DNA of 64,000 bases. Origin: Lytechinus pictus (taxonomy: Eukaryota). Positions 25,602 to 64,000 of this stretch are shown in pieces; the first letter of the stretch is position 1; every line of letters starts with the position of its first letter. The stretch is from assembly GCF_037042905.1 (NCBI RefSeq), contig NC_087248.1, positions 10,292,001 through 10,356,000 on the forward strand, in the 5' to 3' direction. A program made the position numbers and the translations under genes. The notes below the pieces were generated by a model that was not told the DNA's origin, did not search any database, and was given only the letters and a program-made list of their open reading frames with translations.

Positions 25602-25808
25602 NNNNNNNNNNNNNNNNNNNNNNNNNNNNNNNNNNNNNNNNNNNNNNNNNNNNNNNNNNNNNNNNNNNNNNNNNNNNNNNNNNNNNNNNNNNNNNNNNNN
25701 NNNNNNNNNNNNNNNNNNNNNNNNNNNNNNNNNNNNNNNNNNNNNNNNNNNNNNNNNNNNNNNNNNNNNNNNNNNNNNNNNNNNNNNNNNNNNNNNNNNN
25801 NNNNNNNN
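25602..25808. other. Assembly gap
   Basis: Run of N. Confidence 1.
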
Positions 25809-29008: not shown

Positions 29009-29141
29009 NNNNNNNNNNNNNNNNNNNNNNNNNNNNNNNNNNNNNNNNNNNNNNNNNNNNNNNNNNNNNNNNNNNNNNNNNNNNNNNNNNNNNNNNNNNN
29101 NNNNNNNNNNNNNNNNNNNNNNNNNNNNNNNNNNNNNNNNN
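29009..29141. other. Assembly gap
   Basis: Run of N. Confidence 1.
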
Positions 29142-54670: not shown

Positions 54671-55057
54671 TTAAGTCCTTTTAGCAACTTTCTCCCAATT
54701 GTTTTAGCCTATGATGTTAAAATAATTGTTTCATTATTCTCTGATTTTGTTTTGTGTCTGTTTGATTGTTTTACTCTTACTGGTTTAACGTTTTGTTTTA
54801 TATTATTGCATTGTAAATGGAGGGCAGGCCCTATATACTGCACACCGTGTTATACAGTGTGTTCACTTGCAAGTGCATTGATCACTGTGCAAATTCAATT
54901 CATGATTTCATGTTGTTTCCACCCTTTGAATAACGTATGAGACACTGTTATTTTCAGTGGGTGGTTACAGTGTGTGTAACCATGGTGTAACCGTTTGTAA
55001 CAGAAAGAAATAAAAGCTATATTGGAATGGATTGAAAAGAAGGAGTGCGCATGGTTA

Positions 55058-56170
55058 AAGTCCACCGAGGCATGTTTATGACAGAGCTATATTTTCAAAC
55101 ATTGATTCTGTATATAAACACCACATGCGACCGAGGAGCTTCCCCGTAATCACATCTTGCAATTAATACAAATTCAATAATTTCGAGAAAATATACCGTA
55201 CTTTATGTTGTTTAATTCTATTGAATTTGTATTATAGAGATGTGATTACGGGGAGCTTCTTTAATGTGCTGTTGTACAGAATCAAAGTTTTCAAAATTCA
55301 TAGCTCACATAATAGCCTATATGCATTCATAATCAAACACATCTATACCCTGCTATATGGGAAGAAATATACATATAATAATTCATTCCTTTTGAATCAT
55401 CTCAAAAAATAAATATAGAATTCAACCTATCTGATTACAATTTCTCTACAAGTGTGTGTTTGTTTTGTTTGGGGGCTTATTGTGGTTAGTCTACACGTAT
55501 AACGCGTTCGTGTGAAATTGCACTGATCCGATTGCGCAATGTGAGAGGAAGGATGTACCCAAGGATGTACCTAATTAACCCCAAGATCGACGATTGCAAA
55601 AAGTCCACCAAGGCATGTTTATTTATGACAGAGCTATATTTTCAAACATTGATTCTGTACATTAACACCACATGCGATCGAGAGGCTTCCCCGTAATCAC
55701 ATCTTGCAATGAATACAAATTCAATAATTTCGAGAAAATAATATACTTTATGTTGTTTAATTCTATTGAATTTGTATTATAGAGATGTGATTACGGGGAG
55801 CTTCTTTAATGAGGTGTTGTACAGAATCAAAGTTTTCAAAGTTCATAGCTCACATAAGCCTAATCATAATTATTTGCTATGCATTCATAATCAAACACAT
55901 TTATTTCATATACCCTGCTATATGGGAAGAAATACATATATAATAATTCATTCCTTTTGAATCATCACAAAAAAAAATAATAATGTTCAACCTATCTGAT
56001 AACAGTTTCTCTACAAGTGTTTTTTTTTTTTTTTTGGGGGGGGGGCGGGTACTTAATTAGATAGTCTACACATAACTATCGCGTTCGTGTGAAGTGTGGT
56101 CGGAGTTGCACTCTCCAAGATTGCGCAATGTGAGAGGAAGGATGTTCCTAACCCCAAGACGATTGCAAAA
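55058..56170. repeat. Tandem duplication (~545-570 bp x2), each unit with a ~250 bp imperfect hairpin
   Basis: AAAGTCCACC.AGGCATGTTTAT starts at ~55058 and ~55600; CCCGTAATCACATCT..AATACAAATTCAATA / TATTGAATTTGTATT..AGATGTGATTACGGG. Confidence 0.85.
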
Positions 56171-57530: not shown

Positions 57531-57727
57531 NNNNNNNNNNNNNNNNNNNNNNNNNNNNNNNNNNNNNNNNNNNNNNNNNNNNNNNNNNNNNNNNNNNNNN
57601 NNNNNNNNNNNNNNNNNNNNNNNNNNNNNNNNNNNNNNNNNNNNNNNNNNNNNNNNNNNNNNNNNNNNNNNNNNNNNNNNNNNNNNNNNNNNNNNNNNNN
57701 NNNNNNNNNNNNNNNNNNNNNNNNNNN
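57531..57727. other. Assembly gap
   Basis: Run of N. Confidence 1.
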
Positions 57728-58946: not shown

Positions 58947-59150
58947 TAGGGCTAAGTTCGTGCAGGCTCACGTACGTGCAGTCGCCGCTGGCTAACGTCA
59001 GCTTAATGGACGACGCCATATTGCCAGATTCAGGCAGATTTGGCCCGCGCCATCTCCGGCTACACGTACGTGCAGTCGCCGCTGGCTAACGTCAGCTTAA
59101 TGGACGACGCCATATTGCCAGATTCAGGCAGATTTGGCCCGCGCCCTCTC

Positions 59151-62100
59151 CGGCTAAAGCTCGAACGCCATTCACCCATACACTAATTCCCCTTGATTAC
59201 CGTTGTTAAAAACCTCTGTCATATCTTTTCCAGCATTTTTATGAATTAGCGATTGATGTTTTTCCGTTTATCAGATATCCTTCATTATACACATATTTTT
59301 TTCATATTTATAACATTTTTATTTTAATCACAATTTTAGTCCAAACGCGGGTCAGTTTTTGTTAACCCACGTTGTTTGTGCATGCCCACGTATAGCCTTA
59401 CGCGTATTGAAAGGAATGATGTTGGGTCGAAAAACAGAATTGTTATTGTTTGTTCCTTGTTTGTTGGGGATGAAACTATGATGGCGACCAGTCACGTTTG
59501 ACTGTACCGCCAAATAGTTAAGATTAATTAATTAAGGTCAAGGTGAGATAAGAGAAATGAGCAAGGGGCATTGTGGTGGGGGAGGGGGAGAGGGAGAGGG
59601 GGGGGGGGGTTACGAGGGCCGAGTGGGGATACAGTTTCATCATGCAGTACAGGGCGTCGATGAACACTTTTATTTTTTTCTCCAAAATATGGAAAGTGAC
59701 AGAATAATCAGAAAAAGGTTGATTGGTTCTGATTTTGAAAAAAAAACAGAATTTATCAAGATTGCTGTTATTCTTCATGGTTGTAGAATTTAATTTAGTT
59801 TCTCTGATAAGTATAATTCTTTCAAACAACTCAAATTTTGATTAATCGTATTTCATTTATTTCACTCTTTTCTTTCGCCTCGTTTTTTTTTCTTCCAAAA
59901 AACCAGGGAGCTGAAAAATATGAGAGCTAGAACCTAAAGATATGGGGTAGCTATGACGTTGGAGGGGGCGCAGCCTCATGCACTTGCAGATCCAAATCAA
60001 TTTTCACAGGGGACACTTAGAGTAGCCCCTATTTCTTTAATATTATTTTTACAAGCAAAAAGAAGTCAATGAAGACATCAGGCCACCGACAGCTGCCTCG
60101 TCAAAGGGGGGGGGGGGCGGTCGATTATTTTGAGTATTTTTTTTTTCATTTTGTCCTCAATAAGGGGGGGGGGTTCAATTAATTCTATATACACTTCTAT
60201 TGTCTTTATATATGGGGGGGGGGGGTCTGCTACTGAGCATGTTTTTAAAAGGGCTTAATAAGGGGCTTAATACAACAGAAATTGTACGATTTAATACAAT
60301 AAAATGTATCATCGAGGTTAATACTAAATTAATACATAATTAATAATTGTTTTAATTGAAAATGAAAATAATAAAGGCACCCATAGATCTTAACATCTCA
60401 TAAATACAGGCCTAAACCTGTATTGGAAGTTGAACAGGCATAAAGTATAAATGTTTAGCTATATAGCTGATGCTTTGATCCCGCAACCAAATAATGTTAT
60501 CATAAACTAGTAGATGTTATATCAGTCATGTCAGTGGCGTAACAAGTGAAAATAATTGAGGGTACTACGATATGGCGTATCAGGCAAAATTTATAAAATA
60601 TATAGTTGCAAGCAAGCGACATAAGCATAATTTTGACTTTTGGTTACAAAAATCCAATTGAACAATTTCGCAAGATTCTCTTACCTTTTCCTTTTTTTTC
60701 TTGTTCGTGAATTGGGGACCCACCCCCCCCCCCCCCCATACAGCACCACTCTTTGTTGTCACTGTCTAAAATTTGATTTAAACTTTGAGAATTTGAATTT
60801 CTTATCTAAGTAATCCAAAGGGATAAGACAAATATATTTGCAGATTACTTATTTCAAAGTATTTTTATACCTATAACTCCCCAACTCTGCTCTAGCTGCA
60901 CTGCACGTTGCCTAACGGCCTTCCACCAAAGGGCCAGGCCGACTCGCCCCGTGAGCAAGTGACCGCGTTCGCGTAAGTTCACCCGAAGCCATGACTAAAT
61001 TCTGACCATAAACATCACCTAACTAATCACTCTCTGACAATATTTCAAAGTATCTTTTATTACAGTCGATCCTTTGGGCCATTAAACGATAATATTTCCA
61101 ATGTTATCATGACAAACAATTTTAATGAGATAGTGGCATTGTAGAAAAAACAAATTTATAAGCACGAAATGGCACCAGATAAATCATCAAACATACAGCG
61201 CAGCGTTCGGGACTGGTGAGTGGTACGGCTCTCTTGGAGTTTTCGCCCCGACGAATTCGGCGAAAACGCTACCATTGCGCCGTGCGAATGTTCAATCTGC
61301 GGCTCTCAATCAGAGACTTGAATGTCTCTTTTTGCATTATCGAAAATGTATCATAGACTTTGTTTGATTTGTTTACAAGTAAGTTGCATATCCGTCGTGA
61401 TAATTAGGAAAATCCATGATGTCTTCTTCTAATTCTGTAAAAATTACCTCTTCAAAGTGCCTGTGTCAGAAAATTGCCGGAAATCGTAAAAACTTGCCTA
61501 AAATGTCTCTTTTTGAAAGTTCATCCATGGTCTGGAAAAAAATGTTATAATTTATGTAGACGTATACCGTAAACAAATACATCCTCGATCACTGAAATGA
61601 AGTGTTTGCTAAGCTTTTATATCTCAGACCGCGTTACCATGGCAACTTGGGAAAACCTTTATTTTTTACTAATAAAATTCTGGTTTTAAGGGTCATTTTA
61701 GAGACATAAAACTAACCATATTTTGAAGTATTGGGTTTAAATTTCACATAAAACTGAATTATCTATGTTTATACTTTCGTATATGAATATTCATATTTCT
61801 TGTAGAATCCTAGTTTTTGATTGGTCAATGTTTCAGTCATGGATAATAACTGAGCGTTAAAAAATCTGAAAATGCGCATTTTATCGGCAACCAACAAGCA
61901 AGATGGCGGAACACATTAAGTTGGCGCTATGCACGTACGTGGCTAACGCTCGGCTAAAGCTCGAACGCCATTCACCCATACACTAATTCCCCTTGATTAC
62001 CGTTGTTAAAAACCTCTGTCAAATCTTTTCCAGCATTTTTATGAATTAGCGATTGATGTTTTTCCGTTTATCAGATATCCTTCATTATACACATATTTTT

Positions 62101-64000
62101 TTCATATTTATAACATTTTTATTTTAATCACAATTTTAGTCCAAACGCGGGTCAGTTTTTGTTAACCCACGTTGTTTGTGCATGCCCACGTATAACCCAG
62201 AGAGCTCCGGCCCGGGCCGGAGCTCTCTGGGTTAGCCCACGTATAGCCTTACGCGTATTGAAAGGAATGATGTTGGGTCGAAAAACAGAATTGTTATTGT
62301 TTGTTCCTTGTTTGTTGGGGATGAAACTATGATGGCGACCAGTCACGTTTGACTGTACCGCCAAATAGTTAAGATTAATTAATTAAGGTCAAGGTGAGAT
62401 AAGAGAAATGAGCAAGGGGCATTGTGGTGGGGGAGGGGGAGAGGGGGGGGGGGTTACGAGGGCCGAGTGGGGATACAGTTTCATCATGCAGTACAGGGCG
62501 TCGATGAACACTTTTATTTTTTTCTCCAAAATATGGAAAGTGACAGAATAATCAGAAAAAGGTTGATTGGTTCTGATTTTGAAAAAAAAACAGAATTTAT
62601 CAAGATTGCTGTTATTCTTCATGGTTGTAGAATTTAATTTAGTTTCTCTGATAAGTATAATTCTTTCAAACAACTCAAATTTTGATTAATCGTATTTCAT
62701 TTATTTCACTCTTTTCTTTCGCCTCGTTTTTTTTTCTTCCAAAAAACCAGGGAGCTGAAAAATATGAGAGCTAGAACCTAAAGATATGGGGTAGCTATGA
62801 CGTTGGAGGGGGCGCAGCCTCATGCACTTGCAGATCCAAATCAATTTTCACAGGGGACACTTAGAGTAGCCCCTATTTCTTTAATATTATTTTTACAAGC
62901 AAAAAGAAGTCAATGAAGACATCAGGCCACCGACAGCTGCCTCGTCAAAGGGGGGGGGGGGCGGTCGATTATTTTGAGTATTTTTTTTTTCATTTTGTCC
63001 TCAATAAGGGGGGGGGGTTCAATTAATTCTATATACACTTCTATTGTCTTTATATATGGGGGGGGGGGTCTGCTACTGAGCATGTTTTTAAAAGGGCTTA
63101 ATAAGGGGCTTAATACAACAGAAATTGTACGATTTAATACAATAAAATGTATCATCGAGGTTAATACTAAATTAATACATAATTAATAATTGTTTTAATT
63201 GAAAATGAAAATAATAAAGGCACCCATAGATCTTAACATCTCATAAATACAGGCCTAAACCTGTATTGGAAGTTGAACAGGCATAAAGTATAAATGTTTA
63301 GCTATATAGCTGATGCTTTGATCCCGCAACCAAATAATGTTATCATAAACTAGTAGATGTTATATCAGTCATGTCAGTGGCGTAACAAGTGAAAATAATT
63401 GAGGGTACTACGATATGGCGTATCAGGCAAAATTTATAAAATATATAGTTGCAAGCAAGCGACATAAGCATAATTTTGACTTTTGGTTACAAAAATCCAA
63501 TTGAACAATTTCGCAAGATTCTCTTACCTTTTCCTTTTTTTTCTTGTTCGTGAATTGGGGACCCACCCCCCCCCCCCCATACAGCACCACTCTTTGTTGT
63601 CACTGTCTAAAATTTGATTTAAACTTTGAGAATTTGAATTTCTTATCTAAGTAATCCAAAGGGATAAGACAAAAATATTTGCAGATTACTTATTTCAAAG
63701 TATTTTTATACCTATAACTCCCCAACTCTGCTCTAGCTGCACTGCACGTTGCCTAACGGCCTTCCACCAAAGGGCCAGGCCGACTCGCCCCGTGAGCAAG
63801 TGACCGCGTTCGCGTAAGTTCACCCGAAGCCATGACTAAATTCTGACCATAAACATCACCTAACTAATCACTCTCTGACAATATTTCAAAGTATCTTTTA
63901 TTACAGTCGATCCTTTGGGCCATTAAACGATAATATTTCCAATGTTATCATGACAAACAATTTTAATGAGATAGTGGCATTGTAGAAAAAACAAATTTAT
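59151..64000. repeat. ~2.8 kb near-identical tandem duplication in TFB1M intron 1
   Basis: CGGCTAAAGCTCGAACGCC at 59151 and 61952; the copies stay collinear to the window end and differ mainly in G-run lengths and a 51-bp insertion. Confidence 0.95.
62193..62234. mobile_element. 42-bp perfect palindrome insertion with 9-bp TSD
   Basis: GCCCACGTA|TAACCCAGAGAGCTCCGGCCC-GGGCCGGAGCTCTCTGGGTTA|GCCCACGTA; empty site with a single GCCCACGTA at 59384-59392. Confidence 0.92.

Follow-up and report, generated by a model that had tools for sequence, protein, structure and literature searches.

Elements of the P superfamily carry a THAP-type transposase and make target-site duplications (TSDs) of 7–8 bp; Merlin TSDs measure 8–9 bp. 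Work ascribed to Beall & Rio 1997 and Staveley et al. 1995 is said to have found that P-element excision footprints keep part of both termini, and the 'nearly precise excision' of Tn10, reportedly described by Ross, Swan & Kleckner 1979 and Foster et al. 1981, leaves a remnant of roughly 50 bp between 9-bp TSDs. Cleavage of the P element is staggered by 17 nt (PMC7776569). Abortive gap repair combined with MMEJ/NHEJ yields deletion derivatives and MITEs, as in the birth of MITEs from Ozma in Aedes, with small overlaps and filler marking the junctions made by end joining (PMC3814204). MULE/Phantom/Foldback elements are recognised by a 9-bp TSD combined with a foldback build (PMC3169594). In Muta1, the ends are cleaved flush, hairpins form on the flanking DNA and more than 90% of excisions are precise, with subterminal repeats strengthening both transposase binding and cleavage (PMC5499845).

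We analysed a window of 64,000 nucleotides, the whole stretch of Lytechinus pictus DNA presented here, in which the first-pass annotation had described a loopless palindrome inserted with a 9-bp TSD. The segment at 62193–62234 is its own reverse complement (42 bp, 21+21, spacer 0); every other perfect palindrome in the window is a (TA)n microsatellite. It is bordered on the left (62184–62192) and on the right (62235–62243) by the 9-bp TSD GCCCACGTA. The third and last GCCCACGTA in the window, at 59384–59392, is single and scar-free and represents the empty paralogous site, which public contigs of X15, X16 and X17 bridge. The positions thus confirm the reported arrangement of one GCCCACGTA in copy 1 of a duplication and two around the spacerless palindrome in copy 2. 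Within the 42-mer, the 12-nt family terminus TAACCCAGAGAG (AGAGAG type) occupies 62193–62204 on the forward strand and is followed at 62205–62213 by 9 out of 11 stem bases, CTCCGGCCC (CCGG type); the identical 12-nt terminus lies on the opposite strand at 62223–62234. The palindrome consists of the outermost 22 nt of each family end, overlapping at a CG at 62213–62214, with termini identical to those of the 614-bp copies described below. No mismatch is present in the two 12-nt termini or in the TSD.

Self-alignment extended 4 kb past the window revealed a 2.8-kb tandem duplication with the insertion in copy 2. Copy 1 (59151–61942) is non-coding and is separated by an 8-bp junction, CTAACGCT (61943–61950), from copy 2, which spans 61951–64783 (61951–64000 within the window, the end lying 783 bp past it; L052). 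The copies differ by the 51-bp insertion (42 + 9), by three substitutions (59222, 60833 and 61810) and by indels of 7, 1 and 2 bp. Three substitutions over 2.8 kb bear out the earlier description of the insertion as very recent. Scans of the duplicated unit for open reading frames and Rfam matches gave no credible ORF of at least 90 aa and no Rfam match. At all three substitution sites, four out of four public runs carried the copy-2 letters, so the letters of copy 1 may be confined to the assembled animal or haplotype. The 8-bp junction lies within an 11-mer, CGGCTAACGCT, that precedes the duplicated unit in public contigs. The right half of copy 1 (60200–61940, equivalent to 63040–64783 in copy 2) is a high-copy repeat, since public-contig depth there was 10–20 times that of the flanks; the repeat stops precisely at the duplication boundary, and contigs continue from 61943 into other sequence. 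Immediately to the left of the duplication is a 94-bp tandem repeat (58965–59156), and 55057–56040 holds an older tandem duplication (about 545 bp, 88% identity). The window contains N runs at 25602–25808, 29009–29141 and 57531–57727.

The first-pass annotation had proposed a genome search for the terminus, and this search recovered about 1000 matches per strand. Allowing up to two mismatches, we found 1042 forward and 1011 reverse matches to the 18-nt terminus in the 812-Mb genome, compared with 2 and 5 for a reversed control. These counts, together with an expectation of about 1e-8 perfect 42-bp palindromes per 64 kb, ruled out a chance palindrome. Exact terminus matches were mostly pairs 614 bp apart, that is, foldback MITEs whose arms are 97.8% complementary across 276 bp and whose copies diverge from one another by 0.8–12%. 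A second full-length size of roughly 528 bp has the same termini and 9-bp TSDs. Each family end begins with a 12-nt terminus (TAACCCAGRGAG) and continues with an 11-bp stem (CTCCSGCCCGC or variants), a loop of 3 nt, the complement of the stem and, finally, CCCAG; among subfamilies whose interiors are unrelated, only these terminal 40 nt or so are shared. The TAACCCAGRGAGCTC family is a non-coding cut-and-paste foldback MITE family with 9-bp TSDs. The 42-mer carries its 15–16-nt terminus, TAACCCAGRGAGCTC(C), inverted and exact at both ends, together with the 9-bp TSD of the family. By contrast, the full subterminal stem-loop (11-bp stem, 3-nt loop) is absent: nine stem bases are left per side, with two closing pairs lost along with the loop. 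Judged by its sequence, the 42-mer is a truncated derivative of the TAACCCAGRGAGCTC family and not a full member.

Several features of the full-length elements are described here in their own right. The stem variant CCCGTCCGC occurred at 41 out of 403 full-length CCCG-type ends, at one end each, corresponding to about 20% of those elements. In about 40 elements, each of roughly 528 bp, it marks only one of the two ends (one such element pairs G000:C2:35109153 with 35109632), a stable left/right asymmetry despite otherwise like arms. Two 614-bp copies, L004 (G000:C1:24684977) and L009 (C2:27274089), have a common TSD, GTGTTGGTG, and common flanks; both are nested in another repeat and abut another TAACCCAGG-type terminus, possibly a favoured insertion target. 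Direct CCCAGRRGC repeats that resemble CCCAGRGAGC in the terminus lie immediately inward of the end hairpin (for example, L004:1537-1550); CCCAGRRGC could be a second transposase-binding motif. A terminus pair 2.3 kb apart on C16 proved to be nested MITEs only.

Besides the full-length elements, the genome contains about 90 mini forms of 24 to 64 bp. A search for both exact termini at most 30 nt apart returned 60 elements of 37–60 bp, with none in the control. Among the 50 forms listed, 23 were of 49 bp, eight of 45 bp, three of 46 bp, three of 44 bp and one of 42 bp, the remaining sizes being represented once or twice. The 49-mers are laid out as terminus, stem, loop, stem and terminus. The class of 61–91 bp is nearly empty (eight members, four of them special cases), so the size distribution of the mini forms is a distinct peak rather than the end of a continuum. 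We found further loopless perfect palindromes of 44 bp (L047), 46 bp (L048 and L049) and 64 bp (C14:25021475). A genome search for 24-bp palindromes returned 26 copies (24 of AGGGAG type, one of AGAGAG type and one hybrid), with none in the control. The survey of lengths and TSD sizes that had been suggested for the family gave a peak at 37–60 bp plus the 24-mers, with perfect 9-bp TSDs in 14 out of 20 mini forms whose flanks were read and in all 8 full-length copies read.

Some mini forms are clustered. Two 49-bp forms lie 36 bp apart at G000:C15:31103857-31103990, and their loops, ACA and GTA, are those that distinguish the opposite ends of a single full-length subfamily. On G000:C5, a 61-bp form (42883023-42883083) and a 46-bp form (42883588-42883633, L048) of different subtypes, 505 bp apart, provide a second case. 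Three forms of 75–81 bp, at G000:C13:13469229, 13471985 and 13474744, have family ends joined by 18–24 G; their spacing of about 2757 bp places them within a tandem array.

We split each mini form into a prefix from the left and a suffix from the right, both taken from the end type to which the form belongs. The 42-mer resolved into 22+22 nt with a 2-nt CG overlap (end positions 21–22); both termini and the TSD are kept, with CG as microhomology at the junction, as in a remnant of excision or gap repair. The overlap was 2–5 nt in the 45-mers and the 37-mer and comprised the whole stem-loop in the 49-mers; across the sister forms, junctions had overlaps of 2–6 nt or filler, which in a 60-mer (L023) was 16 nt long. 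Because the top strand of the left end equals the bottom strand of the right end, single strands from the two ends can pair only at self-complementary motifs, and the product of such pairing is symmetrical, a loopless perfect palindrome. The self-complementary GAGCTC at end positions 10–15 predicted a 24-bp palindrome, a size that the first search pattern (37–60 bp) could not detect; the later search found the 26 copies given above. Abundance tracked overlap length: 25 nt for the 49-mers (at least 23), 6 nt for the 24-mers (26), 4 nt for the 44/46-mers (3), and 2 nt for the 42-mer and the 64-mer (one each). A CG junction is also present at C13:3740826, next to an AGGGAG-type terminus and with the other terminus lost; its occurrence in a second subtype indicates that this junction has formed at least twice. 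Among the forms listed, the CCGG and GGCC motifs had given no products of 32 or 36 bp, which is a gap in the model.

Taking these results together, the 42-mer is very probably a microhomology-joined deletion derivative of the TAACCCAGRGAGCTC family; that it shrank at this very site, as the whole statement has it, is somewhat more probable than the reverse. A larger member, most likely of the 614-bp AGAGAG/CCGG subfamily, would have inserted at GCCCACGTA in copy 2 after the duplication. A double-strand-break process would then have left about 22 nt of each end, either through excision followed by interrupted gap repair from the sister or homologue or through breakage of the long foldback itself. 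Single strands presumably paired at CG, and fill-in and ligation would have produced the loopless palindrome between intact TSDs, a by-product formed once and not propagated as a 42-mer. Of the two origins offered by the first-pass annotation, the evidence favours the collapsed footprint of a larger element, given that the 614-bp and roughly 528-bp MITEs share the termini and 9-bp TSDs and that the ends are joined at CG. The unusual mobilisation route that had been invoked is not needed, as microhomology joining of identical ends accounts for the loopless symmetry. We infer the larger insert and its later shrinkage from termini, TSD length, empty site, junction structure and sister series that are themselves directly observed; at the insertion site, we saw no larger element, and the only other state known is the empty one.

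The alternative with the most in its favour is that the 42-mer was made by end joining at a donor site and was then cut out and pasted into GCCCACGTA by a transposase. We consider this unlikely, although it has the merit that one event gives both the filled site and a clean empty paralogue three substitutions away. The perfection of the 12-nt termini and TSD agrees with it, as does the conservation across subfamilies of the terminal 40 bp or so alone, which points to cis-signals near the tips. Timing favours it too. If equally mobile, short forms would make up roughly 6–10% of new insertions, and the insertion falls within less than about 0.1% divergence, leaving little time for shrinkage in place, so that an origin in situ wins only if short forms are at least 10–100 times less mobile. 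Such a handicap is plausible by analogy with Muta1, in which subterminal repeats assist binding and cleavage (PMC5499845); the conserved stem-loop has lost its loop and two closing pairs in the 42-mer. By the same analogy, if the family is MULE-like, flush cleavage of the Muta1 type with more than 90% precise excision would not alone leave scars that retain the ends.

The mini forms as a population argue against arrival as a 42-mer. Allowing up to three mismatches, we found no second intact 42-mer genome-wide; singletons are, however, equally expected of a mini-element that moves by non-replicative cut-and-paste, with no gain in copies. A MITE in the strict sense, with the same short form at independent sites and with different TSDs, was not found: the 42-mer is unique, C13:3740826 is of another subtype and has one end, and no idiosyncratic short form occurred at two independent sites. 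The three 45-mers examined (of six identical ones listed) have a common TSD, GACTGTCGG, and common flanks, and were thus copied passively with their host repeat. In a second host-repeat group, 86–92% identical, one ancestral insertion is now 49, 47 and 49 bp long with a flipped loop, which indicates that mini forms persist for a long time in place while the hairpin tip erodes in situ. The variant CCCGTCCGC was present in 5 out of about 23 independent mini forms of the same type, compared with about 20% of full-length elements; the mini forms therefore sample the full-length population, as recurrent by-products would, and a clonal short lineage was rejected. The 24-mers, too small for a plausible transposase site beyond the tip, match the 49-mers in number, which suggests that how readily mini forms arise, rather than how mobile they are, determines their abundance, although the 24-mers may include host-repeat copies. 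We found no sign of a self-propagating short lineage, and the singleton status of the 42-mer, the mirroring of the full-length population and the frequency of the 24-mers all speak against the active ultra-short element that had been proposed.

It is doubtful that the 42-mer, or the 49-mers, are still substrates of the family transposase. If they were, with the 42-mer pasted in here as a 42-bp unit after the duplication, hardly any eukaryotic cut-and-paste element with a documented empty site would be shorter, and a Foldback/MULE-like or Merlin-like enzyme would need no more than 21–22 bp per end, with an incomplete stem-loop, for synapsis, cleavage and integration.

A quite improbable route is that a 49-bp mini form inserted and then lost its 7-bp hairpin tip (GC-GTA-GC) in place by breakage at the palindrome centre and rejoining. 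Among the mini forms the 49-mer is the most frequent, and the overlap of its two 37-nt ends leaves both of them complete; the 49/47/49-bp copies of one insertion attest to tip erosion and loop flipping in place, and loop-less 46-mers and a 44-mer exist. However, this route requires two events within about 0.1% divergence and a 7-bp loss without a flanking direct repeat; an AGAGAG/CCGG-type 49-mer was absent among the 50 forms listed, and the CG overlap gives the same junction in one step.

The insertion is seen in the assembly; confirmation was sought in four public runs, which are Logan de Bruijn contigs. Among the public contigs listed for these runs, none bridges 62193–62234 and none the junction between copies 1 and 2. 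An assembly artefact, in which a longer or absent foldback insert was misassembled as 42 bp or two haplotypes were placed in tandem, would fit these gaps and the copy-2 letters in all four runs, but it is very improbable, given that perfect palindromes are expected to break de Bruijn contigs anyway, that dozens of intact 614-bp foldbacks of the same family are resolved in the same assembly, that mini forms inherited through old host-repeat copies are biological, that the duplication junction reuses an 11-mer found in public contigs, as a real rearrangement would, and that the insertion would remain real, young and polymorphic even if the copies were alleles. Two further mechanisms were rejected: a fixed staggered cut as the sole cause, since retained lengths vary from 15 to 37 nt, and a hairpin-capped break with replication, since the flanks are direct and not inverted repeats.

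The first-pass annotation had linked the 9-bp TSD to Mutator-like transposases. The TSD length and the foldback build fit that assignment, but no transposase could be tied to these ends, and Merlin TSDs are also 8–9 bp long. A MULE-like superfamily is the leading assignment: both the 42-mer and the family copies have the 9-bp TSD that is the Mutator/MULE norm (range 8–10 bp; PMC3169594). The genome contains 17 matches to PF10551 (MULE) and 53 to PF12762 (IS1595/Merlin). The family terminus was absent from 12 MULE loci with 1.5-kb flanks on each side and from a 10-kb locus (L077), and a delimited MULE copy had other ends; it was likewise absent from 12 Merlin loci with 1.5-kb flanks, and the delimited copies L067 and L068 had unrelated ends. 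The transposase-coding element with this terminus that the first-pass annotation had envisaged was thus not found in 24 loci with 1.5-kb flanks plus one 10-kb locus, and there was no transposase-like ORF within 1.5 kb of six unpaired termini. The P superfamily fits poorly: the TSD is 9 bp throughout, compared with its norm of 7–8 bp.

Taken alone, the 42-mer has little weight, being one more transposon scar in non-coding DNA. The roughly 90 mini forms, whose sizes are predicted by the self-complementarity of the ends, form a natural catalogue of repair junctions for the mending of donor sites in the germline, and the pairing of identical ends explains loopless perfect palindromes without special hairpin chemistry. 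For annotation, short perfect palindromes with flanking direct repeats in this genome are likely to be transposon remnants, and not regulatory hairpins or new kinds of element.

Compared with known systems, the family resembles Merlin (IS1595-related and abundant in this genome, with 53 domain matches) in TSD length (8–9 bp); however, the terminus was carried by none of the 12 Merlin loci, and the ends of delimited Merlin copies are unrelated. With Foldback/Mutator elements (Phantom-type; FB of Drosophila, Tm1 of Meloidogyne and Muta1 of Aedes; PMC3169594, PMC5499845), it shares 9-bp TSDs, long foldback arms and many non-coding, MITE-like members. By contrast, each end here has one stem-loop instead of an array of subterminal repeats, a MULE/FLYWCH transposase was not found within the termini, and excision of Muta1 is mostly precise. 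Like P-element footprints, the mini forms are short, palindrome-like scars running from terminus to terminus between TSDs, the 24-mers (15+15 nt with a 6-nt overlap) coming closest; unlike in P elements, the TSD is 9 bp and not 7–8 bp, and retained lengths reach 22–37 nt, so that a fixed stagger alone is insufficient. Tn10 offers a likeness in the transposase-independent, foldback-stimulated deletion of nearly everything between short repeats in long inverted repeats. The 49-mers fit this model well, as the hairpins of the two ends contain 11-bp direct repeats between which such forms can arise, but Tn10 is bacterial, and with a junction homology of 2 nt, repeat slippage fails to explain the 42-mer.

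The products of abortive gap repair show both differences and likenesses. The remnants here measure 24–64 bp, compared with hundreds of base pairs there, and both breakpoints lie inside the inverted repeat, so that only self-complementary motifs serve and perfect palindromes result; amplification into a MITE family, as in the Ozma type of MITE birth, was not seen. In both cases, however, one parent family gives many different products, and as in Ds derived from Ac, deleted MuDR and P elements and the Ozma MITEs, the termini and TSD are kept and the interior is lost, with microhomology or filler at the join. The 42-mer is thus very probably the outcome of ordinary repair chemistry acting on an abundant foldback family, and not a new kind of mobile element.
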